Virus record (IMG/VR): IMGVR_UViG_3300017991_000001
Coordinates: 147,085 to 211,084 of that record
DNA length: 64,000 nt
Direction: 5' to 3' (one strand)
Below, one piece after another: positions 142 through 47,198 of this stretch. The notes beneath the pieces were generated by a model, which had not been told where the DNA came from, did not search any database, and saw only the letters and a list, made by a program, of their open reading frames with translations. A program made the translations under genes and the position numbers. The first letter of the stretch is position 1. Each line of letters starts with the position of its first letter.

Positions 142-978
142 ATGCAAAAAGCAGACCTTCAACTCCTCGAAGCCGCTCCTGACAAGGAGTGGCAGATGGT
201 ACAGGACGCGGTTACGAAGCGCCTCGAGCCGGGTCGCAGCCCCGAGCTGTCCCTGCGCCGGCGCTCCTACCGTTTCCTGCGCCGTTGGGTGAAGGCCTCC
301 ATCTGCGAAGCCGACAAGCTCAAGCGCGAATACCCCGACATCTACGTGGCCTACTGCCTGTACCTGAACCCGGCCAGCGTGCGCTGGATCATCGAGGCGG
401 GGCTGCTGACCGACGTGTCGTACGAGGACATGGCCGAGTACGTGGGCAAGTCGGTCGACGTGCTCAAGACCTACGAGAAGCTCTTCTTCAACGTGCGCCA
501 CCGGCTGGACTCCAAGGGCGAGATCATGAACATGGTTCTGCTCCCCACGGTGGCCTCCGGCCTGGACGGCCGCGACTTCGACTTCCTCTACAAGACGCTG
601 GCCTACTGCGCCGGCTGGAAGGCCCTGCAGGCGTTCATCGAGGTGGGCGAGATGGACGCCAACACCGAGGACTGGCTGCAGTCCTCGTTCCGTTCGCGCC
701 TGAAGAAGCTGGGCTGGATTGCCGTGCACCGCGTCGAGGTCAACCAGTTCACGGCCATCGAGATCATCGACCGGTGCCTGGAACTGGTGCGTTTGGAGAA
801 GGAGCACGGCACCGGAGCCGCCCAGGATCAGGCCTCCCAGCTGATGAAAGACTTGCTGGAGGGATCTTCGCTGACTATCATCTCTTCCAAGGCGAAGTTG
901 TCGGCGAATGAACCGCGTGCACTGTTTGCCAAGGCCGGAACGTACGAGGGGCCTTTCGCGCTCCCACAGGAGACCTGA
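142..978 (+). CDS. hypothetical protein (278 aa)
   Basis: Strong GC3 codon bias; abuts both neighbours. Confidence 0.8.
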   Translation: MQKADLQLLEAAPDKEWQMVQDAVTKRLEPGRSPELSLRRRSYRFLRRWVKASICEADKLKREYPDIYVAYCLYLNPASVRWIIEAGLLTDVSYEDMAEYVGKSVDVLKTYEKLFFNVRHRLDSKGEIMNMVLLPTVASGLDGRDFDFLYKTLAYCAGWKALQAFIEVGEMDANTEDWLQSSFRSRLKKLGWIAVHRVEVNQFTAIEIIDRCLELVRLEKEHGTGAAQDQASQLMKDLLEGSSLTIISSKAKLSANEPRALFAKAGTYEGPFALPQET

Positions 979-979
979 G

Positions 980-2368
980 ATGGAAAAGCTCAGCAAGGAA
1001 AATGAACAGAAGGTCATCGCCGCCATCGAGAGCGCGATCAAGCTGGCCAACGCCGGCTCCACGCCCAACGAGGCGCTGCGCAAGGTGGCCGAGGACAACA
1101 GCTTCACGCCGCCGCTGGTGCGCCGCATGGTCGAGGCCTTCAACGTTTCCAAGACGCTGGCGCACATGAAGCACGCTTCCGGCGAGGACCGCGTGAACTC
1201 CTTCCCGCTGGCCGACGCCGGCGAGATCCTCAAGGAGATGTACCCGGAGAACCCGGTCGCGCCCGCCGACGAGAAGGCTGCCGAGTTCGAGCCGTCCTTC
1301 TACCGGTACCCCGAGCGTCACAACTACATGAAAGAGGCGGCCACGGAAGTCACGCTGCCGCCCCTGGTCGACAAGAAGGCCGAGGCGTACGGGCCCGACC
1401 CGGTCGTGGTGGCGCGCACGCGTGCGGACAGGTTGCAGGGGCTGAGCAAAAGGGCCGACAACAGGCGCTCGGTGTACCGCCAGAAGATCTGGGAGCTGAA
1501 CAGTCTGGTGAAGGAGGGGGGCGCCTATTTCAGGCAGCTCTACCACACCCCGTTTGCCGAGGTCGAACGCAACATGGTCGGCGAGTACGGGGCCATGGGC
1601 AAGACGCTCATGGACATGATCTACAAGGAGGGCCGGCTCAAGGAATCGCGCTACGCCGAGGACGCGCCCGTGCGGCAGTGGCTGTTCGACTCCAAGGCCG
1701 AACCTTACACCCACCTGACCATGGCGCTGAAGGTCGCGTCCGACTCCGTGAAGCTGGTGAAGGAGGCAGCACGGGCCCAGCTCGAGCACGAGAAGTTCGC
1801 ACGGGAGTGCGGCTATCCGCTGCCCGTCGACGACGAGGAGGAGGGTGAGGTCAAGGAGGCGCTTCTTGATGAAGTGCTGCACGAGCACCACACCCCCTTC
1901 GAGGAGAACGCGCTCGCGCCGGCCTCGGAGGTGGCCGAGGACCCTTTTGAGAAAGACGCCGTCCTTCCGGGTCTGCCGGAGACGGCTTTGGCTTCCGGCG
2001 CCATGAGCATCCTGGGCCTGAAGGAGACGGACGAGAAGGACAGGCAGCAGGCGCTCAGCGAGGCGCTGGACCCCGTGCATGAGTCGAAGCTCAGGTCCAT
2101 CTCCACGCAGGCCATGCTGTCCGACTTCATGTCCAACGACCCGATCATCAGCTCCTACTCGCAGGACGACGTCGTGAACGCCTACAACCAGCTGGCGCAG
2201 CTGGCACCGTCCGTGTCGCAGCAGCCCGCGGTGGCGCGCGGCATGCTACGGCGGCTGCTGCAGTCCGAGAGCATCGTGGAACCGCACGAGGCCGGACAGC
2301 TGACGGACGTGGAGACGAAGCTGAGGAAGGGCACACCGGGTATCGCGGAAGTCCCTCCACGCGTTTGA
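980..2368 (+). CDS. hypothetical, probable head-associated protein
   Basis: ATG at 980 right after upstream TGA (MEKLSKENEQ...); many K-x-A motifs (KLA, KVA, KHA, KAA, KEA, KRA, KDA); lies upstream of protease/capsid genes. Confidence 0.7.
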   Translation: MEKLSKENEQKVIAAIESAIKLANAGSTPNEALRKVAEDNSFTPPLVRRMVEAFNVSKTLAHMKHASGEDRVNSFPLADAGEILKEMYPENPVAPADEKAAEFEPSFYRYPERHNYMKEAATEVTLPPLVDKKAEAYGPDPVVVARTRADRLQGLSKRADNRRSVYRQKIWELNSLVKEGGAYFRQLYHTPFAEVERNMVGEYGAMGKTLMDMIYKEGRLKESRYAEDAPVRQWLFDSKAEPYTHLTMALKVASDSVKLVKEAARAQLEHEKFARECGYPLPVDDEEEGEVKEALLDEVLHEHHTPFEENALAPASEVAEDPFEKDAVLPGLPETALASGAMSILGLKETDEKDRQQALSEALDPVHESKLRSISTQAMLSDFMSNDPIISSYSQDDVVNAYNQLAQLAPSVSQQPAVARGMLRRLLQSESIVEPHEAGQLTDVETKLRKGTPGIAEVPPRV

Positions 2369-2380
2369 TCGGAGCCTGAC

Positions 2381-3532
2381 ATGGAGCTGTCCCAAGAACT
2401 CGCCGTGACCTGTGTGGCCGTCAAGGAGGCTTCCGAGAAGGAGGCCATGCCTGGCGTGCCCGCCGCGCTGCCCATGAGCAATGCCCTGGCAGCCCCCGCC
2501 AAGAGCATGGCCGGCCAGGCAACGCAGATGGCCAACCAGCGCGTGGCGCAGGGGCAGGCCACCGAGCGTCAGCAGATCAACGATAAGGAACAACAGGGGC
2601 AAGTCCAGACGGCCAGCCCCATGACCAAGAACATTGCCCCCATCCGTCCCGCGAACATCGGCCAGCCCCTCATACGGCAGGGGTATCAGCCACCCGTGGT
2701 GCGCAATACCTGGTCACCGCCGGTGCCCGTCAAGGCGGCAGCCGACCCCGACCTGACCCAGCTGCGCGCGAAGTTCGAGTCCATGGAAGCCAGGGAACGC
2801 CTGCTGCGTCGGCACGCGCAGAAGTGGGAGGAGTTGTCGGCTGCACGCGCGGCGCGCGAGGAGCCCAGCGCCGTGTCCACGGCGTTACAGCGCATGGCTC
2901 CGGTACCGCACACGATGGGCGAGGCGGCCGTGCGTGCTCCGCTGGCGGCCCTTTCCGGGTACGGCGGATATAGAATGGGCGCCAAGTTGGAGCCGGCCGA
3001 CGTGGAGGAACTGCAGCGCGTGCTGGGCGCTTCCCGCGCCAAGGGCGAGGGGCTGCGCCCGATCGAGCGCAACCTGTCCGACCTGGTCGGTGAGCAACGG
3101 GCAAAGAGACTGGCCAAGGCGTTGCGCCAGGCGGACCCGACCGTGACCGCGCAAGCGCTCAGGGAGGCGGACATCACCGCGCCTGGTGAAGACGTCGCCA
3201 AGCTGCGTAAGCGTATGGGGAAGGCGGTGAAAGGTTCCAAGGGCAAGGCGTTGCGCGGCCTAGCCGGGCGCGCCCGCATCAAGTCCGAGATTTCCAACTT
3301 GTTTCGCCAGGGGCAGAGCCAGCCGCTTGTACCCAAGATGAGACCCTGGCGCATCGGCGGGGCGCTGGGCGGCCTGGCGCTGGGCGGACTGCTGTCCGGC
3401 ATCCCGTACGCGGCACACGCTCTGTACCGCAAGGGCGAGGGCGGCGAGGCGGCCTACCGCGCCGCGCAGCGGGCGAAGGAACTTACCGAGGAGGCTGAGC
3501 GCGTCTCCGCTGAAAGGGAGGCGCTGCTGTGA
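2381..3532 (+). CDS. hypothetical protein, K-x-A-rich N-terminus, basic middle, C-terminal glycine zipper; possible internal head protein
   Basis: GGAG RBS; VKEASEKEA near the N-terminus; IGGALGGLALGGLLSG; TGA overlaps the next GTG. Confidence 0.65.
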   Translation: MELSQELAVTCVAVKEASEKEAMPGVPAALPMSNALAAPAKSMAGQATQMANQRVAQGQATERQQINDKEQQGQVQTASPMTKNIAPIRPANIGQPLIRQGYQPPVVRNTWSPPVPVKAAADPDLTQLRAKFESMEARERLLRRHAQKWEELSAARAAREEPSAVSTALQRMAPVPHTMGEAAVRAPLAALSGYGGYRMGAKLEPADVEELQRVLGASRAKGEGLRPIERNLSDLVGEQRAKRLAKALRQADPTVTAQALREADITAPGEDVAKLRKRMGKAVKGSKGKALRGLAGRARIKSEISNLFRQGQSQPLVPKMRPWRIGGALGGLALGGLLSGIPYAAHALYRKGEGGEAAYRAAQRAKELTEEAERVSAEREALL

Positions 3533-4989
3533 TCAAGGTTATCCGTTCCGACAGCTACGACTTCGACATGCCCGCCGCGTCGCTGGTGCAGGTGTGGTCG
3601 CGCGGCATTGACCGCCACTGGATCACCAAGCGCGCGGCGGTGCTCAACGACGTCGTGCGGGGCATTCAGCCCGAGAAGGGCTTCCAGTACATCCACCTGA
3701 TCACCATGGGGGCGCAGGAGGCATACGGCCCCAACCGCAACGGGGACGGCTTCAACGAGAAGCGGGGCACCTTCGAGCTCCCGTACCCCAAGGACGGCGT
3801 GCCCGTCTACCACATGAGCGGTGGCCTGACCGAGCGGCACAACACCTTCACCAAGAACGCCCACGTCTTCGAGCACCACAAGAACAAGGACCCCAAGAAG
3901 GCCATCGGTTCGGTTCACGCGGACGCCTACAACCCCGAGATGAAGCGGGGCGAGCTGATCGCGAAGGTGCCCGAGAACGACAACTGGCTGCCCCATCTGG
4001 AGAAGCTGGCCAACGGGGAAGATATTCCCTTCAGCATGGCGTGCAAAGTCCCCTATGACGTGTGCACGATCTGCGGGAACAAGGCCAAGTCCCGGGCGGA
4101 ATACTGCAAGCACGCCTCCGACCACCTGACCGAGATCCTGAAGGAAGGCCACCAGTCCTTCGTGATCAACGACCAACCCAACTTCTTCGACATCTCGCGC
4201 GTCTTCCGGCCGGCCGACCGCATCGCCTGGTCGCTCAGGAAAGTGGCCTCGGCGGGGGTCGTTTCGATCAAGTCGGGAGCCCAGTTGGCCGAGGAAGAGG
4301 GGCTGATGTTACCGGAGCGCTTCTGGGACGCGGACAGCCCCGATGCCTCGGCCAAGATCGCCGCCGCGAAGAAGCTGGCCGAGATTGAGAAACTAGTTGA
4401 CGGATCGGCAAGGTCTGTGGACAATGCCGCCCGTTTGAAGGGGTTGGCTTGCGGGTGTCCATCCGAAAACCTTCCCCATGAAGCCATGGAGATCCTTCAG
4501 AAAGCGCAGCTCGGACAGGCGCTACACGGACTGGCGGACGCCAAGATTTGCCTTTCCCTGGAGGACTTCATCAAGCTGGTATCGGGGTCAGAAGCGTGCG
4601 ACTCCGCAGCCGGCGACATCCCTGCCGCAATGGGGGTGCTGCCTGGTGTGTTCAGCCGACTCCTCCGTAATGGGGGAATTGAGGACTGCGCGACGGACTC
4701 GGCGTACGACCCGTCCCGCTCGGCGATACCCAGGTGCATCCGGGAGGCTTTAGCTCCACTGGCAGACGGACACTCGATGTCGGCCGGTCCAGCTACGCGG
4801 CGCATGCAAATCACCATCATTCGCGCGACGCCCAAACCTTCCAAAGCACCCGTGAAACTCGCTTCCACCTCAAAGTCTGCTGAGCGCTTGGCCAGGGAGT
4901 ACGCCAAGTACCAGCTTTCGTTCGTTGCAGCAGCGGGAAGGGACGACGAACTGGTTCACGGGCTGACGGTCCTGCGCAACCACACTTGA
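3529..4989 (+). CDS. putative prohead (capsid maturation) protease
   Basis: GPNRNGDGF, HVFEHHKN and FSMACKVPYDVCTICGN motifs (candidate catalytic His/Ser plus CxxC) as in large-phage prohead proteases; directly precedes scaffold-like and capsid genes. Confidence 0.6.
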   Translation: MIKVIRSDSYDFDMPAASLVQVWSRGIDRHWITKRAAVLNDVVRGIQPEKGFQYIHLITMGAQEAYGPNRNGDGFNEKRGTFELPYPKDGVPVYHMSGGLTERHNTFTKNAHVFEHHKNKDPKKAIGSVHADAYNPEMKRGELIAKVPENDNWLPHLEKLANGEDIPFSMACKVPYDVCTICGNKAKSRAEYCKHASDHLTEILKEGHQSFVINDQPNFFDISRVFRPADRIAWSLRKVASAGVVSIKSGAQLAEEEGLMLPERFWDADSPDASAKIAAAKKLAEIEKLVDGSARSVDNAARLKGLACGCPSENLPHEAMEILQKAQLGQALHGLADAKICLSLEDFIKLVSGSEACDSAAGDIPAAMGVLPGVFSRLLRNGGIEDCATDSAYDPSRSAIPRCIREALAPLADGHSMSAGPATRRMQITIIRATPKPSKAPVKLASTSKSAERLAREYAKYQLSFVAAAGRDDELVHGLTVLRNHT

Positions 4990-5038
4990 AGACGCGGGAC
5001 GTTTTTACAGTCATCACAGTCCTCTAGGAGGCAGACGG

Positions 5039-6310
5039 ATGAGCAATCAGAGTCTCATGGCCATGATGGACACGCTCCTCAAGCAGGCCAATGACGTGGA
5101 AAAGGAAGCGCTTTCCGACGTCTCGGGCCCCGAACCGACGACCCATCCGGTCATGTCGGCCGACGATGGCACGCAGGCTGCCACCGAGGGGGCGAGAAGT
5201 TCCGAGAACGAAAGCGACGCTCGCGAGGAACACGGCGACCTGGCCGTCACCGGACAGGAGGACGCCGAGAGTGCCGAGGCCGGTGAGAAGGACGAAGCCG
5301 ACAGTATCGGCACCGAGACATCAGATTCGGACGAGATGCGAGGGAACGTGGAGCAGCCCAAGGCCACGAAGGACGCCCCGCCGGACAGCGGCCCGGGCGA
5401 CCACACCTTCTCCGAGAAGTACTCCGCCGCGGCCATCGTGGATTCGGGCAACAAGCTGCTCGCCGCGCTGGGCAACCTCACCGGACAGCACAAGCAGGCC
5501 GATGAGAAGAAGGAAGGCGAGGAGAAGAAGGACAAGAAGAAGGATGAGAAGGGCGAAGCGTGTGACGACGGAGAGAACTGCGACAAGAGCGCTTCCGAAC
5601 AGGAAAAGCGCGCCGCGGCCGAGAAGTATCAGGAGGACGCGGAAGCAGGGTACGTCGCCGCCCAAATGATCGCCGAGCAGCTGATGAGCAAGCAGGCTGA
5701 GGAGGAAGAGCTCGTCAAGCTGGCGGAGAACATCATCAAGACCGCGCACGCTGACGCGGATCTCCTCTGCGAATTCCTGGACAGCCACGAGAAGGGTGTC
5801 AAGGGCCTGGAGGCCGTCAAGAAGGCGTCTCTCAAGAAGAAGGCGCAGCCTCCCATGGGCGCGCTGCCTGCCATGGGTGGCGGCGGTGAGCTTGGCCCCG
5901 AAGCCGGCGGCATGATCCCCCCGGAAGCACTGGCGGCGGGCGCTCCCCCCGAGGAGCTTCCTCCCGAAGCGGGCATGGAAGGCGCGCCCGGTGACGAAGA
6001 GGCGGCGATCGACGCCCTGGCCGATGCACTGGCCGAAGCGGGCGTGACCCCGGAAGAGCTGGCTGAAACCATCGCCGAGGCGGGTGGTGAAGGCGAAGTC
6101 GCACCCGAAGGCCTCGAAGAGGGCATGGAGGAAGAGGCCCCCGCAGAGGTGCCCGGAGAGGTCGTTGAAGACGCAGCCGAAGGGGCTGCCGAGGGTGCTG
6201 CTGAAGGCGCCACCGAGGGAACCGAAGAGGCGGAGGAGGAGGCGCCCAAGGCTGCCTCTATGAGCAAGCAGAGCATCAAGGAGGCTTTGCTGAACATCGC
6301 ACGGGGCTAA
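5039..6310 (+). CDS. putative capsid scaffolding protein
   Basis: Very acidic, low complexity, E/A/G/P-rich; about a dozen K-x-A sites; lies between protease and capsid; AGGAGG RBS. Confidence 0.6.
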   Translation: MSNQSLMAMMDTLLKQANDVEKEALSDVSGPEPTTHPVMSADDGTQAATEGARSSENESDAREEHGDLAVTGQEDAESAEAGEKDEADSIGTETSDSDEMRGNVEQPKATKDAPPDSGPGDHTFSEKYSAAAIVDSGNKLLAALGNLTGQHKQADEKKEGEEKKDKKKDEKGEACDDGENCDKSASEQEKRAAAEKYQEDAEAGYVAAQMIAEQLMSKQAEEEELVKLAENIIKTAHADADLLCEFLDSHEKGVKGLEAVKKASLKKKAQPPMGALPAMGGGGELGPEAGGMIPPEALAAGAPPEELPPEAGMEGAPGDEEAAIDALADALAEAGVTPEELAETIAEAGGEGEVAPEGLEEGMEEEAPAEVPGEVVEDAAEGAAEGAAEGATEGTEEAEEEAPKAASMSKQSIKEALLNIARG

Positions 6311-6359
6311 ACAAGCCGATTGTCGTTCGCGAGTCTGCAAGGATCAAGGAGATAGGACA

Positions 6360-6743
6360 ATGGCGAAGGTCGAAGTCGATACCAAGGTCCTCGAAGCTGT
6401 GGTGGACTATGTCGAGCAGGCGACCGGCTACGCTCAGAAGCAGGCGGAGATTGAAAAAGCCGTCGCGGAGCGGGGCCCCGAGGTTGTCGATGCGCTCATC
6501 AAGGCAGGGTTCGTCACCGAGGACAAACGCGAGTCGGCCATCCGAGCAACCAGTGACCCGAGGAAGGTGCTCGAGTCGCTGGAGAAGACGGCGAAGCTCA
6601 AGGCCGGACGCAAGAGCGCGTCAGCGCCGGAACCGTTGGGTACCGGTGAAGACGTCAAGGAAGCTGGCGTGCAAAGGCCGGGGGACACGTCTCCCGCGAT
6701 GGCCGCCGCCAACGACAGGTTCATGCGCGCAATAGGCTTCTGA
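6360..6743 (+). CDS. small head-module protein (scaffold-like)
   Basis: AAGGAG RBS; KQA/KTA/KSA/KEA sites; position in the head cluster. Confidence 0.6.
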   Translation: MAKVEVDTKVLEAVVDYVEQATGYAQKQAEIEKAVAERGPEVVDALIKAGFVTEDKRESAIRATSDPRKVLESLEKTAKLKAGRKSASAPEPLGTGEDVKEAGVQRPGDTSPAMAAANDRFMRAIGF

Positions 6744-6811
6744 GAGAGGTCCGCGCTCAAACGGCGTTAGAGACAGTGACAGGAAACCTCAGGATTTAGG
6801 AGGAGACCAAG

Positions 6812-7318
6812 ATGCCGGGCACCAACGTTCCTGGACAGATGTACGACCACGAGCTCAATCCCGTAAAAGGGTGGCCGAGCCCGTACGCGGTCGACAAGAT
6901 CGCCGAGATCGCTTCAGGCGTCGAGGGTATCCTCGGCGGCATGGTGATCTCACTGGATGCCAACGGAAAGTTCATTCGGGGCGCCGACGGCTCGGCCATG
7001 CCGTGCTTCGCGTTTCCGAACGCGTCGGACTTCGATGTGCTGTCCGATCGCGGGAACATTTCCGGCGGAAACATGATGGGCCTCGTGGCCGTTGGCGCCT
7101 ACGAACTCGAGAGTACCGAGTACATGGGCTCCGGCTTCGCGGTCAACACGCCGCTGACCGCGCACAACGTTGCCGGTGACGATCAGGGCAAACTCAAGGT
7201 TACGACCTTGGGCAGCTCCGACCTCATCGTTGGCGTCTGCAACCGCGGCCCGACGGCGAACGAGTACAACAAGGAGATGGTCCGCTTCTGGCCTGTCTAT
7301 CTGCCCAAGCGTGCGTAA
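6812..7318 (+). CDS. putative capsid cement/decoration protein
   Basis: 168 aa, Gly-rich and beta-like; strong AGGAGGAG RBS; sits shortly upstream of the major capsid gene, a typical decoration position. Confidence 0.5.
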   Translation: MPGTNVPGQMYDHELNPVKGWPSPYAVDKIAEIASGVEGILGGMVISLDANGKFIRGADGSAMPCFAFPNASDFDVLSDRGNISGGNMMGLVAVGAYELESTEYMGSGFAVNTPLTAHNVAGDDQGKLKVTTLGSSDLIVGVCNRGPTANEYNKEMVRFWPVYLPKRA

Positions 7319-7356
7319 GCGCTTCACCCTGAACATCCGTTTGGAGGTGAGGGCTG

Positions 7357-7737
7357 ATGGACAAAAAGTGTGCAGCGTACCTGATCAAGGAGGCGACCCG
7401 GCCATACGCCCGGGGTAGCTCCGGGGGTCGAGTCATCCCCGTGCCAGGTATGCAGGAGGCCGTCGCTGCAGCCACCCGGCAGGGTATCGGCAGGAAGACG
7501 CCCCCTGCGGGCGGCGGAGGAGGAGGTGGCGGCTTTCTGGCCCCCTTCCGCCGGATGGGTTGGCGGCGGGGCTTGCGAGCGGCCGGCATCGGAGGCGGTA
7601 TCGGTGCCCTCCTTTGGGGCTTGGGCCATCTGTGGGCGAACAAGAATCGCCCCAGCGTGTCCGAGAACGTCACGCAAAACCTCAACGCGAGGATGCGTGG
7701 AGCTGGAGAAGAAGGCATTTACATGAAACCTCAGTAA
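7357..7737 (+). CDS. leader-bearing small basic glycine-zipper protein
   Basis: GGAGG RBS; N-terminus MDKKCAAYLIKEA; Gly run; AAGIGGGIGALLWGLG hydrophobic segment. Confidence 0.7.
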   Translation: MDKKCAAYLIKEATRPYARGSSGGRVIPVPGMQEAVAAATRQGIGRKTPPAGGGGGGGGFLAPFRRMGWRRGLRAAGIGGGIGALLWGLGHLWANKNRPSVSENVTQNLNARMRGAGEEGIYMKPQ

Positions 7738-7803
7738 TTGGTGCGGGCAGCTGCCAAGAGCGCATCCCGCGAGACGTAAGGCCAATTGATAAGGAGACAG
7801 GCC

Positions 7804-8751
7804 GTGGCTAACCCAACTGCGAGCGAGCCGACCTCTCGGATGGTCAACGATGCATTCATCGATCAGTTGGCCAGCGGGAACGACCGGATCGTGAAGGAAG
7901 CCCAGGACGCGATCAACGATTACGTCCGGGTAAGGATGCGTGAAGATGGCTTCTGGCGGAGAATCCTCCCGCCGGTGACCATCACCAACGACGAGCTGGA
8001 TCGGCAGGTGGACACCGACAAGCCCGTCAAGGTGGTCGACAAGGAACCTGAGAGCCCTGCGGCGATCAGCGTGCCTTTTGCCTCGCTGCCCATGAACCGG
8101 TACATCCGCGGGCCCCGGTTCCGCGTGATGTTCGACCGCATCCTGACGCCCAAGTTCACGAAGGACGTGGACGAGCTCAGGACCTACGACATGGACATCC
8201 GGCAGATCCTGTCGGACAACTCCATCAAGGACATGCTGGCCGAAGAAGACGGCAAGGCGATTGCCACCGTCAACTTCCTGCTCCTCGGCGTCAACACGCC
8301 CCTGGCCGAGACGGGCGTCGCGCAGTGGGTTGCCATCTCCGGTGGCGTCACCCGCGACAACCTGGCTGAAGCCATGAAGGTGCTCCCCCGCACCCCGAAC
8401 CACCTGAACGTGGCCACGGTGTTGGTCAACAACGTCACCATCTGGGACGTTGTCAAGTTCGGGCGCGACGAGGTCGGTGGTGACCTGTCCCAGGACCTGT
8501 TCGAGAACGGGTTCGCGGAGCGGGAGCTGCTCGGCCGGCGCTGGATCGTCACGATCAAGCGGGACCTGGTGCCTGACAGCACCATCTTCCTGTTTGCCGC
8601 GCCGAAGTTCCTCGGCAAGTTCTTCGTGCTCGAGGACACGACGATGTACATTGATCGCCGTGCCTTCATGCTCGAGTTCTTCGCGTACGAGAGCATTGGC
8701 TCCTCGATCGCGAACGTGGCCGGCATCGGGCGTGTCGACTTCGAGCCCTAA
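7804..8751 (+). CDS. major capsid protein (probable HK97 fold)
   Basis: GTG at 7804 after AAGGAG; ~315 aa; VRVRMREDGFWRRILPP and C-terminal FFAYESIGSSIANVAGIGRVDF resemble large-phage capsid proteins; follows protease and scaffold; followed by a hairpin. Confidence 0.7.
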   Translation: MANPTASEPTSRMVNDAFIDQLASGNDRIVKEAQDAINDYVRVRMREDGFWRRILPPVTITNDELDRQVDTDKPVKVVDKEPESPAAISVPFASLPMNRYIRGPRFRVMFDRILTPKFTKDVDELRTYDMDIRQILSDNSIKDMLAEEDGKAIATVNFLLLGVNTPLAETGVAQWVAISGGVTRDNLAEAMKVLPRTPNHLNVATVLVNNVTIWDVVKFGRDEVGGDLSQDLFENGFAERELLGRRWIVTIKRDLVPDSTIFLFAAPKFLGKFFVLEDTTMYIDRRAFMLEFFAYESIGSSIANVAGIGRVDFEP

Positions 8752-8795
8752 GCTCGCGCCGTAGGTCTGTGTGTAGCAGGCTTGCACCCTAACCC

Positions 8796-8819
8796 GGGCG
8801 GTCGGTGATCCGGCCGCCC
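8796..8819 (+). terminator. GC-rich hairpin after the capsid gene (attenuator or stabilising stem, no U tract)
   Basis: GGGCGGTCGG-TGAT-CCGGCCGCCC inverted repeat. Confidence 0.4.
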
Positions 8820-8850
8820 CTATGCAAAACGAGCACTCGAGGAGAGTCCG

Positions 8851-9183
8851 ATGAGTCAGGAAATGACCCAGGAGGACGCGGCGCTGTTCGAGAACGTGTA
8901 CGCGCCCGCCTTCGCCCAGAAGATGGCCTCCAACGGCCGCCCGCTCCACGACGACGAGTCGATGGAGCACGCGCTGGAGCTGACGGCGCGGGTGAAGCAG
9001 GAGGTGCAGTCTTCCGACGCCAACTCGATCAAGGAAGCCAACCTGGCTTTCCGCAAGGCGACCGGCGCGGACGAGCGCGATGCCGAAGAGGCTCGCGAGA
9101 CCAGCACCAAGGAGGCTGCCCGCAAGCTGGCGGCCGACCCCGGCTTCAGGCAGATGCTGGAAGCGGCGCGCAGCGCCCAGTAG
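8851..9183 (+). CDS. hypothetical head-module protein
   Basis: GAGGAG RBS; repeated KEA/KMA/KLA. Confidence 0.7.
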   Translation: MSQEMTQEDAALFENVYAPAFAQKMASNGRPLHDDESMEHALELTARVKQEVQSSDANSIKEANLAFRKATGADERDAEEARETSTKEAARKLAADPGFRQMLEAARSAQ

Positions 9184-9218
9184 GGATCGTTATCCTTCAC
9201 ACGCGGTGAGGTAATCCC

Positions 9219-9683
9219 ATGCCGGGTAAGCGTGGAATCGGTGAGGCGGACTTCGTAACGCCCCGCCAGGTATACCGGGAGGATGTCGATGCCGTCGACA
9301 GTGGCGGCGTCACGGACACGGACATCCCCATCCTGGACAGCCGCGAGCTGGCGACTCAGCGACAGGGGTTGGGTCAGGGCGACGTGGCGCAGTACGGGCG
9401 CAACGCGCAGTTGAACCTGGCTTGCATCCCTGAAGGTTTTTCCAGCGTCACGATGCAGTTGTGGCTCTGGGCCGACGTGGAGGAGCCGCTCGAACCGGGT
9501 ACCTCTTCCTCTTCGTACGGCGTGCTGCCGACCACGGAGGAGTGGGTACAGGTCGAGGAAAAGACGATCACGGGACCGGAGTTGTGGGTTGTCAAAGACG
9601 TTCCTCCGGGGCAATATAAGGTTATCGTCACGGCCAAGACAGGCAGTGGCCATCTTCAGATCCGCGAGCAACACGCAGCGTAA
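9219..9683 (+). CDS. hypothetical virion protein with a short Ser tract
   Basis: GAGG RBS; beta-rich; PGTSSSSY. Confidence 0.7.
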   Translation: MPGKRGIGEADFVTPRQVYREDVDAVDSGGVTDTDIPILDSRELATQRQGLGQGDVAQYGRNAQLNLACIPEGFSSVTMQLWLWADVEEPLEPGTSSSSYGVLPTTEEWVQVEEKTITGPELWVVKDVPPGQYKVIVTAKTGSGHLQIREQHAA

Positions 9684-9697
9684 GGAGTGAGGAGAAC

Positions 9698-9943
9698 ATG
9701 AGAACGACCATCACTAACACTTCGGGCGCGGAAAAGACCTTCGGGTGGATTCCTCCGCACGGGCACACCTTGGCGAACGGAGCATCCGTCGTCATTGAGG
9801 GCGACCTGCGCACGATCCTGGGAGGCGGCCGTGGTCGATACTCCAGGGGTCAGGAGCTTGCGGGCCTCAACGACGCGGTCACCCGCGGCCAAGTGACGGA
9901 AGAGGAGACCGTCGGTCCGTCCAGCTCTTCGAGCAGCGCCTAA
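9698..9943 (+). CDS. small protein with FGWIPPHG domain and C-terminal poly-Ser
   Basis: GAGGAG RBS; homologous to the N-terminus of the 59643 protein; ends GPSSSSSSA. Confidence 0.7.
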   Translation: MRTTITNTSGAEKTFGWIPPHGHTLANGASVVIEGDLRTILGGGRGRYSRGQELAGLNDAVTRGQVTEEETVGPSSSSSSA

Positions 9944-9985
9944 CCGCCGCCCGGCGGCGGTTTGCCGCGATACGGCGAATGAACC

Positions 9986-10022
9986 GCCGCCCGGCTATGT
10001 GTACATGGCCGGGCGGCTTTTT
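9986..10022 (+). terminator. Rho-independent terminator ending the head operon
   Basis: GCCGCCCGGCTATG-TGTA-CATGGCCGGGCGGC stem followed by TTTTT; a second hairpin at 9942-9962 begins with the same 14 bp (AACCGCCGCCCGGC). Confidence 0.8.
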
Positions 10023-10043
10023 CATTAGGAGAGGGACGCACAG

Positions 10044-10967
10044 ATGGCATTCGCGAACGAATGCATTGACGCTCAGGGGGTCTGCCCCAACCGCATCCCG
10101 TTCCTGGTGACCGGGCAGTGCGCCGTGGAGTCGCTGTACATCACCATCAAGGACATCAACAGCGGCGAGCCCATCGACCTGACTCAGTACGGGATCTTCT
10201 CCTCGTCGGACCCGAGCAGCTCATCGTCCTCGTCTTCCTCCAGCTTCTTCAGCAGCAGCTCCTCCTCGGGGGGCGACGACCCGGAGGACGGAGTCGAGTT
10301 CGTGGCCAAGGAGCTGCCTAAAACGCCCACGTACCTCTTCAAGAAGTACGGCGTCGTGGAGAGCGAGGAGGACGCGCGGAACGGTCGGGTGCGCCTGGAC
10401 GTGACGGCCGAGGACACGGCCCGCGCGGGGATCTGGTCCGCGATGGCCGGCGTCTGGTACAACGGCTACATACGCAAGCTGATGCCGTTCTACTACGAGG
10501 TCCAGCCCAACCTGCTGGCCGACTACTGGAACGGCCCCCTGACGACCTACCAGCTGCGCCTGTACCTGCGGGACAAGTGCGCTGAAGACAACTTCCTGCT
10601 CGACGACACGGAGTTCAAGCAGGAAGAGCTGCACGCGATGATGATCAAGGTGATCGACGAGTGGAACGAGGAGCCGCCGCCCGGCTTCGAGTCCAACCCG
10701 GTCGACTTCCCCTACCGTCACAACTGGGCCGAGGCGGTCATAGGCGAGCTGTTCACCATGGCGGCCTACCAGCTGCGCCGGAACAAGCTGGACTACACCG
10801 CCGGCGGGGTGCAGGTGGACGACGAGGCCCGCTGGGAGATGTACCTGGCCCGCGCGAAGGAACTCAAGTCGGAGTGGAAGGCGTTCATCATCCGCAAGAA
10901 GATCGAGCTGAACATTGAGGGTGGTTTCCAGAGCCTGGGAGGGTATCGGCACACGATACCGCGATAG
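10044..10967 (+). CDS. putative head-tail adaptor/neck protein with a poly-Ser insert
   Basis: C-half LRLYLRDK..DNFLLDD..NKLDYTAGGVQVDD resembles connector proteins; position after the capsid operon. Confidence 0.5.
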   Translation: MAFANECIDAQGVCPNRIPFLVTGQCAVESLYITIKDINSGEPIDLTQYGIFSSSDPSSSSSSSSSSFFSSSSSSGGDDPEDGVEFVAKELPKTPTYLFKKYGVVESEEDARNGRVRLDVTAEDTARAGIWSAMAGVWYNGYIRKLMPFYYEVQPNLLADYWNGPLTTYQLRLYLRDKCAEDNFLLDDTEFKQEELHAMMIKVIDEWNEEPPPGFESNPVDFPYRHNWAEAVIGELFTMAAYQLRRNKLDYTAGGVQVDDEARWEMYLARAKELKSEWKAFIIRKKIELNIEGGFQSLGGYRHTIPR

Positions 10968-10969
10968 TC

Positions 10970-11572
10970 ATGGAAAAAGAAGCCGTCGGGCCCGTTGCCG
11001 GGGCCCTTGGAAAGGCCTGGGGCATCGGTAAGGTTCTGCTGGGTTTCGGGGACAAGATGCCGAAGTGGTTGTGGCCCCTCTTCGGCATCGCCGCGGCGTC
11101 ACCCGTCGTGGGCTACGCCCTTGAGAGCCGGCGCGAGAAGTCCAAGCGCACCGACGAGATCAGGCGCCGCATGAACGTGATGCGGCAGCTGCCGGGCGGG
11201 GAGGCGCTCCCGATGAACTTCGGGGAGACGCAGCCCCTGCAGGCCAAGCGAACGTCGGAGGAGGGGTACCTGCCCTTCCCGCTGCCCCCGAAGCAGGAGT
11301 CCATCCTGTCCAAGTTCGGGGAGGCGCGGGTCGTCGTGGCACGTTCGCTGGGACGGCCCGAGATCAAGGAGTCGGGGCTCAACGAGCTGGGGATCATGTT
11401 GCAGCAGGCCAAGAACAGGGCCAAGCAGAAGAGCCCGGCGAGCACGCTGAACGAGGGCGTGGACACCGAGCCGAAGGGCGAGAAGCCCGAAGAGAAGCGC
11501 GAGCAGCAGGGTGAGGCTAGGCCTGCAGCCGACTACGCCAGCGTGGGCGGCGGCATGGCGCACGGAGTGTGA
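10970..11572 (+). CDS. hypothetical protein (MEKEA start, amphipathic/hydrophobic N-segment)
   Basis: ATG 2 nt after the upstream TAG; K-x-A at residues 3-5. Confidence 0.7.
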   Translation: MEKEAVGPVAGALGKAWGIGKVLLGFGDKMPKWLWPLFGIAAASPVVGYALESRREKSKRTDEIRRRMNVMRQLPGGEALPMNFGETQPLQAKRTSEEGYLPFPLPPKQESILSKFGEARVVVARSLGRPEIKESGLNELGIMLQQAKNRAKQKSPASTLNEGVDTEPKGEKPEEKREQQGEARPAADYASVGGGMAHGV

Positions 11573-11573
11573 G

Positions 11574-12710
11574 ATGAATCACCGGGCTTACTTGTTTAAG
11601 GAAGCAGCCAAGTGGTCTCGCCGCTTGATGGGTATGCTACGTTCTGCGACCCCCAAGAGGCGTAAACGCTTACTTAATCAATTCTACGAAGGTCATCTTC
11701 CTGAAAAGGGAATGGTGAGTCGGTATGGCTTAGAGGACGATCTAAGGGAGATGCAAACGTATAGTAGAGCACTGGAAAGGGCCGAGGATGCTTCAGAAGC
11801 GATGTCAGGATTGAAACAGCGTATGATAGAAAGAAAGATCCCTGTTCCGAAAACTGCCCCCACTCCAAAGGGCTTTCGTGACTATGGGTATGGTATGTCA
11901 GGTGCACGCACCATCGCTTCCGACCTGACAGAAGTGTTCCCTAAAGCAAAGAGATCAAAGATAAAAGGCATTGTGAAAAGAAGTCCGGCCGCTTTGTACA
12001 AATACCTGGCAAGTCAAGTTAGCGCTTATCCAATGAGTCCTGAAAGACGGTGGGGTGCCAATAGTCTACTGGAAAAGTGGCTTGTGTCGGGCAAAGGGAA
12101 AGCATTCAAACCACGTCCACCGCATAAGTATATGAAGACGCATAAGACAAAAGGGGGCAAAGTTGTCACGGAGGAATATAAGAAAAAGCAACCCGAGTAT
12201 CAGCCCGAAGCACACGTCTGGAGAGGCTATGGTTCGGACCGTCCTCTGCTTGCTCGTACAAGCGATGTTTTTGTTTCACCACACCCGCAAGTGGCAACAA
12301 GTTTTGGTGACCTCGTGGCCCGCATCCCTTTATCCCGATACGGCAACGTAAAGTATAGCCCGGACGTGGGGCTGAAATTTGAAGGTGCTGTTTCCTCTGG
12401 GTATAAGTGGCGTAAGAAGCGCCTTGCAAAGATCAAAAAAAGAATGTTGAAGGGGAAAGGATACAAGAAGTTCATCTACCCCGGAATGAACGCTCCCCTT
12501 CGAGATTATGAAACCGTTTTACCGACAGTGGGACCAAAGGACATCGGGGAGCTGTACAGCAGCCATGACTACAAACTGCACCCGCTTCGTTTGAAACTGC
12601 CGAAAAGGATGCAGACTGCAGGCAAGCGGACAGTACCGGCTACTGGCGAGAATCTGCTTTCACATCCCGTTACGAAGTCATTGTCTGAATTTGTAACACC
12701 AATCATGTAG
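11574..12710 (+). CDS. leader-bearing, AT-richer basic protein with ADP-ribosyltransferase-like motifs
   Basis: Starts MNHRAYLFKEA; HVWRG ... VFVSPHPQVATSFG ... RDYETVL; codon usage differs visibly from the flanks. Confidence 0.55.
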   Translation: MNHRAYLFKEAAKWSRRLMGMLRSATPKRRKRLLNQFYEGHLPEKGMVSRYGLEDDLREMQTYSRALERAEDASEAMSGLKQRMIERKIPVPKTAPTPKGFRDYGYGMSGARTIASDLTEVFPKAKRSKIKGIVKRSPAALYKYLASQVSAYPMSPERRWGANSLLEKWLVSGKGKAFKPRPPHKYMKTHKTKGGKVVTEEYKKKQPEYQPEAHVWRGYGSDRPLLARTSDVFVSPHPQVATSFGDLVARIPLSRYGNVKYSPDVGLKFEGAVSSGYKWRKKRLAKIKKRMLKGKGYKKFIYPGMNAPLRDYETVLPTVGPKDIGELYSSHDYKLHPLRLKLPKRMQTAGKRTVPATGENLLSHPVTKSLSEFVTPIM

Positions 12711-12719
12711 AGGAAAAAC

Positions 12720-13697
12720 ATGACAGACGTGCCGGTCCTACAGGGTTACGACATCTCGGCCATCGACTGCGATGTGTTCGAGCGTATCCAGATCCAGACC
12801 AACCCTCTGGGCGGCAACGTCATTGCGTGGGGCCTGCAGCAGGGCTTCAATCAACCCGGTCCCTATCACTTCTACGTGGACTTCGGCCGCTCCGGCACCA
12901 ACGAGTGGGAGGTCCTCAACCAGACCCCCGTCGTGGACGACTGCTTCTTCGTGGACCCCTGCCAGCGCCACTGGGACACGCTGGTCGACTACTTCTACAG
13001 GGTTCGCCTGGTGCTGCCCAGCGTCAAGGACGACGCCGGCAACTGTGTAGCCTACGTCTCCCAGCCCCAGCAGGCCAACGGGCTGTGGAACAAGAAGGAC
13101 TGGCTGAAGGCGCGCTACATCATCCGCCAGGAACTGAAGTTGCAGGACAAGGCCACCACCCAGACGTCGAAGGGTGTGCTGCTCAAGCGCCGGCGCTACG
13201 GCGAGCAGTCGGTGACGACCACCACCTGGGACGTCGGCGAGATCCAGCACACCGGTTCCACGGTGGATTACGGGACCGGCATCGTGGGCGGGTACTTCCG
13301 GGCCATCGATTACCGGATCACCTTTGACACGCCCTGGCGGCGCGAGTTCGGGCGCGACAACCCCACCAAGGGCACCACGCACGAGATCAAGCGCTCCGGG
13401 CGGGCCATCGCCTACCCCTACGTTGAACACGACGATGTGTTCCATCGGCTGGACAGCGGAGAGCGCTTTGTCATCAAGGCGGTGGAGACCGTCGCCGAGA
13501 TCGGCAACATCCCGATCATCGTGAAGCTCGAGTTGAGCCTTGCCCCAACGACCGCTGAGATTTATAAGATACCCCTTTCAGGGGGTTCCTCGTCCGCCGC
13601 GCCTGAGTCGTCGGACAGTTCGGAGTCAAGCCCAAGCGGCGTCGAACCCGAGAGCTGCGGCCCCACGGCCCGCATCGATGACGCCGGAGAGTGGTAA
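12720..13697 (+). CDS. putative neck/head-closure protein
   Basis: GAGG RBS; YGTGIVGGYF and GERFVIKAV motifs; position; Ser-rich C-terminal tail. Confidence 0.5.
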   Translation: MTDVPVLQGYDISAIDCDVFERIQIQTNPLGGNVIAWGLQQGFNQPGPYHFYVDFGRSGTNEWEVLNQTPVVDDCFFVDPCQRHWDTLVDYFYRVRLVLPSVKDDAGNCVAYVSQPQQANGLWNKKDWLKARYIIRQELKLQDKATTQTSKGVLLKRRRYGEQSVTTTTWDVGEIQHTGSTVDYGTGIVGGYFRAIDYRITFDTPWRREFGRDNPTKGTTHEIKRSGRAIAYPYVEHDDVFHRLDSGERFVIKAVETVAEIGNIPIIVKLELSLAPTTAEIYKIPLSGGSSSAAPESSDSSESSPSGVEPESCGPTARIDDAGEW

Positions 13698-25350: not shown

Positions 25351-26986
25351 AAACTTCTACCGCGTCGATGTGCAGGTGCGGGCCGAGATCGGCGGGCAAT
25401 CCGTGCCCGTGAACAGCGTCTCCGTGCGCTACTCGATCGACCGTATACCGGAAGCCGCTATTACCATACCAGTGGGCCGCTCAGCGCGCGGGGACGCCGT
25501 ACACGTGGGTGCGGGTGTTTTCGGCACGCTGCCTCCCTTTACGTCCATGCGTATCTACGCGCTTGCTGAGGCGACGCCCGCCGGTCGCGACGCTCCGCGA
25601 AAAGGAGGATTGCCGCAAGGGGAGTTCCTTCTGTTCGATGGGTACGTGTCCGCGCCGTCCATGCATCTCGATGTTTCAGGCGGCATGGGCAGTGCCACGC
25701 TCCGTGTACAAGGTTTTGGAAGGCTGGGCGGCTTGGCTGGAGCAACCACGCTGGGCGTGGGCGTGACCTTGAACAAGCCTCCGGGCGGTACGGACGTGTT
25801 TATGAGTAGTTTTGGTCAGAACGAGAAGAACAACCACCTGACGATTACTGACCAGCTCATGAAGAAGGGGTATTACAGAGACATCGGTGAAGCCGTTTTG
25901 GAACTGTTTGACGACGCGCTGAACGTGACCAGCGTTTGGGCCCACGATCAGCCGGGTTCGGCCAACGCTGGAGCTGCCGCGGACCGTGCCCACGCGAGTC
26001 TGGTGTCGGGCGCCAGCTTCGACCTGCTCAAGCGCGCGTCTCAGGTCAATCAGCAGGCGTTCGGACGCATGGTGGCGGAAACATTAGCGAATGTTTTCTG
26101 GGGCGTGTGGTCGGGCGTCGACAAAGCTGGAAACTTCTCGCCCAGCGCGGGCGGCGATTTGTGGGAAGTGATGCAGAAGCTCCAAGGCGTTTTCTACTTC
26201 CACGTCGTACCCACGGCGGCCACGGATTACATGGCGCCGATTACCCCCAACCTTGGCGGCGACCCGAACAACCTCTTCCCGGCCGGTGAATATTCCATCA
26301 TAGGCGGGGGTGAGGATTTCTTTGAAGGAGGGGGCGCCCGTTACATGTACGCCTATATCACACAGGTGGGTTTGGCGGCGTCGAGTTTCCAATCCTCTCC
26401 GTGGAATGACGGTTCGTCGGTAACCGGGCGCGTAGGGTACGCGAACTTGTCGTTGGGCGATGAAGACTTCGTGTTGGACGGTGGGCGCATCTTCATGTGC
26501 GGTTCACCGCCGTGGCTCATACCTGCCGGTTCACAAGCCAAGGACACACTGAATCCGTTCAAGGGCATCAGCGACGCGGCAGGTTCCGGCGGTTGGTTTA
26601 GCAGTGGCAAGCGGGCGTCGGAAATCGCCATGTTCGGTTCAACGCTGGGTGACCGTGTCGCCAGAACCATCCTGCATGAGCTGGTCTTTGAGCACCGTAA
26701 GCTTGCCGTTGCCGGCCGCCTGCGCACGGACGTGGCACCCGGCAACATCGTACGAGTTACGCTGCCCGCGGAAGGGTTCATCGGTCAACCCGGTGACAAC
26801 CTGTATGGGATGGCAAGCGATGTTATCCTGAGGATTATGACTCAGGAAGGCGGCAGTTTGGCGCGAACGGAGGTGGGCATTTCGCACCTGCGCACCGAAA
26901 GCGAGCACGAACGCCTCACGTTGGACGAACACCCCGTATACGGGGAGACTTGGTCGGGCGTGCCGTTAGTCGTGGAGGAGAGCTGA
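25334..26986 (+). CDS. putative baseplate hub protein (gp27/gpD-like)
   Basis: VSVRYSIDRIPEAAITI, LLFDGYV and C-terminal GRLRTDVAPGNIVRV patterns typical of hub proteins. Confidence 0.55.
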   Translation: MAIRLENFYRVDVQVRAEIGGQSVPVNSVSVRYSIDRIPEAAITIPVGRSARGDAVHVGAGVFGTLPPFTSMRIYALAEATPAGRDAPRKGGLPQGEFLLFDGYVSAPSMHLDVSGGMGSATLRVQGFGRLGGLAGATTLGVGVTLNKPPGGTDVFMSSFGQNEKNNHLTITDQLMKKGYYRDIGEAVLELFDDALNVTSVWAHDQPGSANAGAAADRAHASLVSGASFDLLKRASQVNQQAFGRMVAETLANVFWGVWSGVDKAGNFSPSAGGDLWEVMQKLQGVFYFHVVPTAATDYMAPITPNLGGDPNNLFPAGEYSIIGGGEDFFEGGGARYMYAYITQVGLAASSFQSSPWNDGSSVTGRVGYANLSLGDEDFVLDGGRIFMCGSPPWLIPAGSQAKDTLNPFKGISDAAGSGGWFSSGKRASEIAMFGSTLGDRVARTILHELVFEHRKLAVAGRLRTDVAPGNIVRVTLPAEGFIGQPGDNLYGMASDVILRIMTQEGGSLARTEVGISHLRTESEHERLTLDEHPVYGETWSGVPLVVEES

Positions 26987-34485: not shown

Positions 34486-34854
34486 ATGAATCATCGGGCT
34501 TTCCTGCTTAAAGAGGCTGTGCAGAAGCGGTCCTACAGTCTGCTTCTGGGCCCTGTCGGCGGTGGTGCCGTGGGGGGCACCATGGCCGCACGGAACATCG
34601 ATCCCGAGCACAAGGAACGCATCAAGAAGATCCTGTACGGCGTGATGTACGGCACCGGCGGCGGCCTGATAGGAGGGGTGGGCGGACAGCTGGCCGGCGG
34701 CGCGGTGGGCGGTTTCGGTGGCAAGCACATCGGCAGGTTGGGGGGTATGGGGAGAGTCGGCGGAGCGGCCGGCATGACCCTCGGGGCGCTGCTGGGGGCC
34801 TTCGGAGGCATGGCTGCGGGCGGGCGCCTGGGCGGCATTAAAGCATCGGAATAG
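34486..34854 (+). CDS. leader-bearing glycine-zipper protein
   Basis: GAGG RBS; MNHRAFLLKEA; repeated GxxxG hydrophobic helices. Confidence 0.75.
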   Translation: MNHRAFLLKEAVQKRSYSLLLGPVGGGAVGGTMAARNIDPEHKERIKKILYGVMYGTGGGLIGGVGGQLAGGAVGGFGGKHIGRLGGMGRVGGAAGMTLGALLGAFGGMAAGGRLGGIKASE

Positions 34855-46802: not shown

Positions 46803-47198
46803 ATGCTGCATCTACCTTTCAAGCTGTCGCCAACGGGCAGGGCGGAGCGTCCCAAGATCAACCGGCCCGCGCCTGCGCCCGCGCCTGCGCCCGCGCCTGC
46901 GCCCGCTCCCGTAATAGAACCCGAGGAAAACGTGTCGCACATGATAACGGACGACAACGTGTTGGACTTGCTGGACAACCAGCGCGTACTGTCGTTTCTT
47001 CCACACCTGGGTCCTGCCTTTAGCGGGTGGAAACCCAAGAAACCTTGCCCGCGAGAAGAGGAGCGCAGGGAGTACGCCAAGGTGCTCCGGCGCATGCTTC
47101 GCCACATGAAGCCGAAGCGCAGACGCCTGCTCAAGAAGGCTCTGCGTGTGAGGCGGCTGACGTTCAGTCTTGAAGGCGGTCCCGCGGAAACAATTTGA
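46803..47198 (+). CDS. small basic protein with (PA)n linker; paralogue family A
   Basis: GAGG RBS, ATG 46803; ITDDNVLDLLDN..V...PHL. Confidence 0.6.
   Translation: MLHLPFKLSPTGRAERPKINRPAPAPAPAPAPAPAPVIEPEENVSHMITDDNVLDLLDNQRVLSFLPHLGPAFSGWKPKKPCPREEERREYAKVLRRMLRHMKPKRRRLLKKALRVRRLTFSLEGGPAETI
46866..46910 (+). repeat. 12-bp tandem repeat CCCGCGCCTGCG x3+ encoding PAPA
   Basis: Directly visible in the sequence. Confidence 0.85.

Follow-up and report, generated by a model that had tools for sequence, protein, structure and literature searches.

A tag-bearing, low-GC accessory gene of an uncultured jumbo phage with a predicted ADP-ribosyltransferase-fold domain

The delivery of ADP-ribosyltransferases (ARTs) by phages, for which T4 Alt is the example, and the loading of virion cargo by a tag, as with the T4 internal proteins, are to our knowledge known almost only from T4-like phages. 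Both ideas come together in the gene described here, which lies in a stretch of 64,000 nucleotides (the window, meaning the whole stretch analysed) of IMG/VR contig UViG_3300017991_000001. This contig of 211,084 bp derives from an uncultured jumbo phage with a G+C content (GC) of about 64%, which belongs to an unrelated lineage without a cultured close relative; the closest cultured phages by major capsid protein (MCP) are Salmonella phage Arash and three Vibrio phages, with 31% identity only. The gene is the following, with GC3 standing for GC at third codon positions and pI for the isoelectric point.

11574..12710, + strand: gene for a protein of 378 amino acids (aa), pI 10.3, GC 0.49, GC3 0.50, from ATG at 11574 to TAG at 12710

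Its protein shares an 11-residue N-terminal tag with six other open reading frames (ORFs) and has a C-terminal domain predicted to adopt the ART fold, so that it is probably a virion-delivered, host-modifying enzyme. Belief and doubt are about balanced for the full account, which is an accessory, fast-evolving jumbo-phage protein built of the tag, a basic helical region and a C-terminal ART-fold domain, delivered by the virion and modifying the host.

T4 Alt, an NAD+--arginine ADP-ribosyltransferase of the Alt/VIP2 clade of R-S-E ARTs, matches PF03496 (ADPrib_exo_Tox) at 5.8e-36 with its ART domain at residues 374-614. It is packaged and injected (PMC5512222), and its annotation records packaging and the loss of 6 N-terminal residues. 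The gene of T4 Alt and the present gene are both late phage genes in or near structural genes, and both proteins have a long noncatalytic N-terminal part followed by a C-terminal ART domain, which is predicted in the 378-aa protein; this parallel of layout supports that part of the comparison with T4 Alt made in an earlier reading of the letters alone (the sequence-only reading). Both proteins also carry an aromatic-R, an FVS and an acid-x-E followed by hydrophobic-hydrophobic-L-P, at a similar distance from R to E (96 residues in the 378-aa protein, 98 in Alt). The two differ in that no sequence homology is detectable between them, that D-x-E replaces the E-x-E of Alt and S-P-H its S-T-S, and that a 23-residue Lys-rich insertion lies ahead of the E motif. 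Furthermore, the C3, iota and VIP2 structures found by an Alt profile are absent from the top 50 VIA-align matches of the model of the present protein, and its N-terminal tag is common to other proteins.

In the T-even internal proteins IPI, IPII and IPIII and the variable IP loci, as in the tagged ORFs of the window, a short N-terminal peptide alone is common to unrelated, fast-diversifying proteins of variable slots. The T-even proteins are highly diverse apart from their conserved capsid-targeting sequence; among phages, no other case in which many diverse proteins have a short N-terminal peptide in common is well studied, and their cargo is thought to counter host defences (PMC3012670). 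The present phage differs in tag sequence and in lineage, its MCP being so distant even from the closest cultured relatives; its tagged genes are scattered over head, tail and baseplate blocks, packaging and cleavage of their products are putative, and its cargo includes a predicted enzyme of 378 aa.

Two further groups of ARTs are close in predicted fold. The ART-PolyVal proteins (PF18760, Tox-ART-HYD2 clade) are ARTs carried by phages; their delivery together with the DNA is predicted, and their active site is of the H-Y-D type (PMC5512222). By language-model features and by ESMFold shape no named neighbours of the 378-aa protein are nearer, but that protein gives no Pfam match, is not a multidomain polyvalent protein, and has an invariant Arg on strand 1 and S/T on strand 2. 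VIA-align also puts the Scabin/pierisin and cholera-toxin-group R-S-E mono-ARTs in one fold class with the model (Z 4.3 for Scabin; 3.0-3.8 for LT, PT, PltA and CARDS); they differ in that these Z-scores are low, sequence identity is 6-15% with no sequence-level relation, and the proteins are secreted toxins from another biological context. The active site of Scabin comprises Arg77, Ser117-Thr-Thr and Gln158-x-Glu160, and the S-T-T variant of the second motif is tolerated there (PMC7828395).

The tag and the ORFs that bear it are listed below.

11574..11606, + strand: leader MNHRAYLFKEA, common to the 378-aa protein and six other ORFs
7357..7737, + strand: leader-bearing ORF MDKKCAAYLIKEATRP, just upstream of the major capsid gene, with positional counterparts in the related contigs L002 and L008
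17607..18308, + strand: leader-bearing ORF MDYRGYLIKQAAAG
30655-31464, 31454-32086 and 32089-32853, + strand: three tandem leader-bearing ORFs directly after the baseplate-wedge gene
34486..34854, + strand: leader-bearing ORF MNHRAFLLKEAVQK

The consensus of the leader is M-[ND]-x-[RK]-[AG]-[YF]-L-[ILF]-K-[QER]-A. A search of the six-frame translation of the window with the pattern [ND]x[RK][AG][YF]L[ILF]K[QER]A gave six matches, all on the + strand and right after a start codon (11574, 17607, 30655, 31454, 32089 and 34486), against none in 200 shuffles, while the seventh ORF (7357) has the core AYLIKEA only. The signal is at the peptide level; the codons differ synonymously, and nothing is common 5' of the ATG. 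In the AlphaFold2 (AF2) model of the full-length 378-aa protein the leader region forms a helix over residues 3-24, the top-scored part of that model. The same short peptide at the extreme N-terminus of seven otherwise unrelated ORFs of one phage is the mark by which cargo with a T4-type capsid-targeting sequence is known, and all seven ORFs lie inside the structural gene block. The best precedent for the tag is this T4 sequence; by analogy with it, the 11-residue peptide would direct the 378-aa protein, like the six other late or structural-module proteins, into the assembling virion, and the protein would then reach the host cell together with the DNA. It fits such a picture that the tagged gene is extremely divergent within a conserved neighbourhood.

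Among the competing explanations the one that survives best concerns the tag, which could serve to bind a chaperone or assembly factor or could form a helix that associates with membranes, with the enzyme acting late inside the cell, like T4 ModA/ModB, instead of being injected. This explanation is possible, if clearly the less favoured, and several observations that weigh against simple head targeting speak for it. The tagged ORFs are found not only near head genes but also next to a sheath-sized gene and the baseplate wedge, which makes a head-targeting role less secure; several of them, including two of the three tandem ORFs, have Gly-rich hydrophobic segments past the tag; no prohead protease was recognised among the window proteins; and the tag ends in K-[QER]-A, not in a uniform T4-like cleavage motif. 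However, T4 alt itself adjoins baseplate genes, so location is weak evidence either way, and the restriction of all seven tagged ORFs to the structural block, together with the capsid-targeting sequence as the sole well-studied precedent, argues for packaging. No similar tag was found in the head region of phage Arash. Examples of the Gly-rich hydrophobic stretches past the tag are LMGGGTLGGGYLAG and VLGGIGGGLAAAGSTGLL. Tagged ORFs occur at matching positions in the related contigs L002, L007 and L008.

The remainder of the protein is divided as follows.

11607..12140, + strand: N-terminal helical region (aa 12-189), weakly conserved
12186..12578, + strand: predicted ART-fold core (about aa 205-335), from the AF2 model, VIA-align and Atlas shape matches that span residues 210-335
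12213..12227, + strand: strand 1, HVWRG (aa 214-218), with W216-R217-G218 invariant and R217 as candidate NAD-binding Arg
12267..12308, + strand: strand 2 and helix, VFVSPHPQVATSFG (aa 232-245), with F233-V234 and H237-P238 invariant; candidate 'STS'-type motif
12321..12332, + strand: RIPL, invariant; predicted strand 3
12402..12470, + strand: Lys/Arg-rich helical insertion YKWRKKRLAKIKKRMLKGKGYKK (aa 277-299) between strand 3 and the E motif, with a helix at domain residues 88-103
12501..12521, + strand: RDYETVL (aa 310-316), with D311-Y312-E313-x-V315-L316-P317 invariant and E313 as candidate catalytic Glu
12633..12668, + strand: conserved C-terminal block VPATGENLLSHP

The motifs lie where the sequence-only reading had put them, with HVWRG at 12213, RDYETVL at 12501 and VFVSPHPQVATSFG from 12267 (about 12270 in that reading). 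Among approximately 15 billion proteins only two relatives of the 378-aa protein were found, P0002 (459 aa) and P0003 (504 aa), both 26-30% identical to its residues 107-367. Across the three members, at about 30% overall identity, WRG, FV[S/T]xHP, RIPL and LxDYExVLP are invariant or conservatively replaced. S235 is Thr in both relatives (FVTAHP for FVSPHP), with the rest unlike STS or STT; the third motif has D-x-E in place of E/Q-x-E; the relatives do not conserve H213; and a second acidic position is conserved, being D264 in the 378-aa protein and Glu in the relatives. The ordered pattern R...[FV][ST]...[EQD]xE-h-h-LP, written after the data had been seen, matches 8 of 10 Alt-family domains and no other ORF (at least 150 aa) among 1,995 from 84 related loci.

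An AF2 model (m475cdc2cb356) of residues 190-378, computed from the three-sequence alignment, reached a predicted local distance difference test score (pLDDT) of 58 and a predicted template modelling score of 0.57. In the model HVWRGY forms strand 1, FV a short strand with a helix after it on PQVAT, and LVARIP strand 3; a long Lys-rich helix and three further strands follow. When the model was compared with 48,161 PDB chains by VIA-align, about 23 of the top 25 matches were ART-fold proteins from all three ART clades, among them Tpt1/KptA, TreX, Scabin, CopC, CARDS, diphtheria toxin, PARP16, DarT, Arr, PltA, LT and PT. R217 (model residue 28) is located in predicted strand 1, and the starts of the VIA alignments, read with a first strand free of gaps, put it on Scabin R77. 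On the same assumption it would presumably fall on LT R7, PT R9, CARDS R10 and DT H21. An Atlas shape search with the AF2 domain model returned DUF952 first and DRAT fourth, and a separate ESMFold model in the ESM Atlas matches ART-PolyVal, DRAT, DUF3990 and PARP over residues 197-342. Of the 100 named clusters nearest to the C-terminal domain in language-model features, at least 78 are ART families, and P0003 draws ART-PolyVal as well. On the strength of these models the C-terminal domain likely has the ART fold. The domain would then bind NAD+ through R217 and S235 and transfer ADP-ribose, with E313 as catalytic residue, to a host target, so that the host would be taken over or its defence disarmed; the middle part of the protein would be the basic helical N-terminal region.

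A number of results weigh against an ART. No sequence method sees one in the protein. Pfam, PHROGs and NCBIfam gave no match even at E 10 for the whole protein, the C-terminal domain or the relatives, none of which matched PF03496, and PDB profile searches gave no match for the protein. The full-length AF2 model failed (pLDDT 39.8), only one of five AF2 runs folded for residues 190-378, and in the domain model pLDDT falls below 50 over the stretch that holds the E motif. All VIA Z-scores, from 5.6 to about 2.5, are below the tool's caution line of 8, and values below 8 can reflect a common arrangement, so the argument rests on the make-up of the match list and not on single scores. VIA-align does not depend on Foldseek, and Foldseek, run with the domain model against PDB, AFDB clusters and BFVD, found nothing below E 0.1; the sequence-only reading had proposed such a check against ART folds. 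The pdb_via library likewise offered no match for re-alignment. In addition, the language-model neighbours are H-Y-D/E families, whereas the motifs of the protein read R-S-E.

The comparison with Alt at the sequence level is no more than suggestive. A large protein search with T4 Alt returned only copies at least 98% identical, so ten domains derived by tblastn, one of T4 and the others of nine diverged T4-like phages, went into the Alt profile. Its motifs are [YW]R, FVSTS and ExE[VI][IV]LPRG. In hhalign the R and FVS blocks of the 378-aa protein align to the first two motifs of the profile, including FVSTS (P 0.068), and in Viterbi hhalign FIYPG..DYETVLP pairs with VVLPG..EMEVILP of Alt (P 0.081). 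These alignments, at P 0.07-0.08, are not significant, and 6% of column shuffles are as good, which also counts against the ART assignment. The sequence-only reading had called the protein Alt-like with R-S-E ART motifs. Its ART part stood at the level of fold, by VIA-align, Atlas shape, features and motif conservation, but found no sequence-level match, and membership in the Alt/VIP2 family was not borne out by the Pfam searches, by hhalign or by the third motif, D-x-E.

One PDB entry among the VIA matches, 9k3a_B (rank 6, Z 3.8), is a packaged ejection protein domain of the cyanophage A4 pre-ejectosome. The paper on cyanophage A4 describes no ART in the pre-ejectosome protein (PMC12002296), and the match was set aside as evidence for an ART in an ejection protein; the domain could be ART-like without having been noticed as such, or the match could be due to chance.

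A doubtful, though not far-fetched, alternative is that the ART fold is right but the protein is no R-S-E modifier of proteins. It would then be a minimal ART like ART-PolyVal, Arr, AcrIF11 and Tpt1, its target would be a nucleic acid, a small molecule or a defence protein, and catalysis might depend on D264. All named language-model neighbours are of the H-Y-D/E type (ART-PolyVal 34, Arr-ms 41, plus PARP, AcrIF11 and Tox-ART-HYD1), the top structural matches are RNA 2'-phosphotransferases and the DNA-acting Scabin, and the pI of 10.3 and the Lys/Arg-rich insertion suit such a substrate range. The acidic residue conserved at D264 keeps a minimal H-Y-D-like layout possible. Yet the H-Y-D configuration of ART-PolyVal was not found, for strand 1 has the invariant Arg in place of His, with H213 not conserved, and strand 2 has the S/T of FV[ST] in place of Tyr; moreover, the invariant DYExVLP resembles the ExE-h-h-LP of the Alt family.

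Unlikely, but worth weighing, is a non-enzymatic basic internal virion protein, that is a DNA binder, decoy or inhibitor like T4 IPI, in which the conserved blocks would be structural and the ART-like prediction would reflect a degenerate or misjudged fold. The strong positive charge (77 K+R vs 33 D+E, besides the high pI), the low confidence of the models and the lack of a sequence-level ART signal are in its favour, as is the nature of the T-even internal proteins, diverse tag-bearing inhibitors of defence (PMC3012670). Against it, three independent predictors agree on an ART, and the residues invariant at 30% identity are those expected of an active site.

The preferred account, a tagged and virion-delivered ART-fold protein, also has to explain the composition of its gene. 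In 300-nt windows GC is 0.47-0.51 over 11.6-12.8 kb and 0.62-0.68 on either side, and the drop matches the borders of the gene. Compared with the 55 other + strand genes, which have mean GC 0.641 and mean GC3 0.839 (GC3 standard deviation 0.068), its GC of 0.49 and GC3 of 0.50 make it the strongest outlier in the window, with a GC3 z of -5.1. The sequence-only reading was thus right that the gene is more AT-rich than its neighbours, with non-GC3 codons, and that it carries the shared leader, and the GC and codon profile that it had asked for shows a low-GC tract that begins and ends at the gene's borders. A spurious ORF was considered and ruled out by the conserved homologues, the ribosome-binding site (GGAG 7-10 nt 5' of the ATG) and the tag; the stop TGA of the preceding gene ends 1 nt before the ATG. 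The neighbours are as follows.

10970..11572, + strand: upstream neighbour p200, 200 aa with a hydrophobic segment, GC3 0.89; native and fast-evolving, 35% identical to the copy in L002
12720..13697, + strand: downstream neighbour p325, a conserved structural-module gene

The two relatives were obtained stepwise. A word-indexed search of 5.8 billion clusters returned the 378-aa protein itself only, an exhaustive phmmer search over 1.84 billion representatives returned one relative, P0002, and P0003 came from a profile search. Scans of IMG/VR and of JGI metagenome contigs by pattern hit no contig but that of the window itself, no further member was found by hmmsearch among 7,122 ORFs of the 84 related loci, and tblastn and megablast against 50,697 phage records found nothing. 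From the 80 related jumbo-phage loci gathered via the capsid protein, no homologue was found in the other 78. P0003 is encoded on the 25.5-kb contig L002, which is collinear with window positions 900-12700 and whose neighbouring genes are 53-93% identical to those of the window (MCP 93%; p307, encoded at 10044-10967, 78%), compared with only 26% for the gene in question. P0002 is encoded on the 1.7-kb contig L001, where the next gene directly after it is a homologue of p325 (79% identical). All three copies occupy one slot, in the order p200, the tagged gene and p325. P0003 begins MRDYRTHLIKEATKWGRR where the 378-aa protein begins MNHRAYLFKEAAKWSRR; the tag is the same, and the similarity runs on past it. 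In L001 (positions 1-123) the frame of P0002 continues 5' of the called start and resembles the N-terminal region of P0003 (…GRRALEILQRKGLRGRDILP…); this frame starts with a stop codon at the first triplet of the contig, so that the tag of the P0002 copy is not visible.

Since p307 and p325 are adjacent in many related loci and elsewhere the gap between them holds 0.3-4 kb of unrelated genes, the slot between these two conserved structural genes is a variable accessory position. In more distant relatives the slot contains an insert of 3.7-4.1 kb (noted at 6876-9200 in L045; at 13763-16147 in L050, L051 and L053; at 13718-16070 in L084), with genes for a protein that has a Walker-A motif (…LLVGAPGTGKT…) and for another of about 500 aa. 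In L052, L059 and L067 small Cys-rich ORFs of about 100-116 aa, HNH-like in look, were seen.

The phages of the homologues have about 42-54% GC (L002 roughly 50%). In L002 the homologue is mildly low in composition (GC3 0.33 vs 0.31-0.66), and elsewhere it is no outlier. The low-GC tract of the window starts at the ATG and includes the leader codons, with TTG TTT for the Leu and Phe of the leader where the other leaders have CTG ATC or similar. Because the leader is inside the low-GC tract and P0003 has the same leader at the same position, leader and enzyme travel as one gene in this phage group. The whole tagged gene probably came into the 64%-GC genome from a phage with lower GC that belongs to the same group of tag users, and the simplest reading of its composition is that it has not yet drifted to that of the recipient. 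The entry, leader included, would have taken place through recombination with a tag-using relative of lower GC; neither repeats nor mobile-element marks were found at the flanks of the gene, and it is not bracketed by a promoter or terminator. The recent acquisition proposed by the sequence-only reading therefore survives in part, as the composition outlier makes entry from a lower-GC phage likely, but its source would lie within the phage group. Capture of a foreign enzyme from outside that group behind a resident leader, the origin suggested by that reading, is very improbable and was rejected, for although the gene is the strongest GC3 outlier of the window and is absent from most relatives, the low-GC tract takes in the leader, P0003 has the same extended leader with KEAxKWxRR in the same slot of a sister phage with roughly 50% GC, the slot recurs in L001, and no relative beyond this phage group was found among the 15 billion proteins.

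The main added interest of the locus is the seven-member tag system. If the preferred account is true, it would provide a new ART family, with three members so far, and a second natural packaging tag, of use for finding injected effectors in metagenomic phages and perhaps for loading proteins into particles; it would also mean that tagged cargo genes move between phages approximately 15 GC points apart. If the ART prediction fails, the gene would be an ordinary hypervariable accessory gene. With modest confidence the protein can be regarded as a very divergent variant of a known phage weapon, its clade of the ART fold being left between the R-S-E and H-Y-D types. A bolder version would be a long shot, namely that the tag serves a general exchangeable cargo system, in which tagged proteins are loaded, delivered and swapped across GC, and that the new ART family is aimed, by its basic surface and Lys-rich insertion, at host nucleic acid or a nucleic-acid-bound defence complex and not at RNA polymerase.

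The gene block around 11574-12710 is structural, and most other window proteins gave no family match in the library searches. The matches obtained are listed below.

7786-8751: weak major-head match in the family-library search
28998-30647: baseplate-wedge protein, by family match
42949-44769: repeat-bearing fibre or decoration protein of 606 aa, by PHROGs, with four tandem repeats of about 100 aa

The repeats of the last match PHROGs labelled variously as tail fibre, head decoration and virion structural protein (E down to 3e-65). Amid the tail and baseplate genes, a protein of 244 aa (26950-27684) gives a match (E 1.6e-11) to a PHROG with the annotation RNA polymerase sigma factor, and in phage Arash (L096, 139441-141261) an annotated RNA polymerase beta subunit is found just upstream of the structural block. 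A second compositional outlier is the 671-aa ORF at 44777-46792 (GC 0.55, GC3 0.66, no PHROG match), which may represent a further accessory gene acquired where the fibre block ends; between it and the high-GC3 gene that follows at 47195 lies a low-GC stretch at 46.8-47.2 kb. Several structural-module proteins (10044-10967, 9698-9943 and 12720-13697) contain long serine runs or end in them, with a run of 25 letters within p307 and Ser-rich C-termini in the 81-aa and 325-aa proteins.

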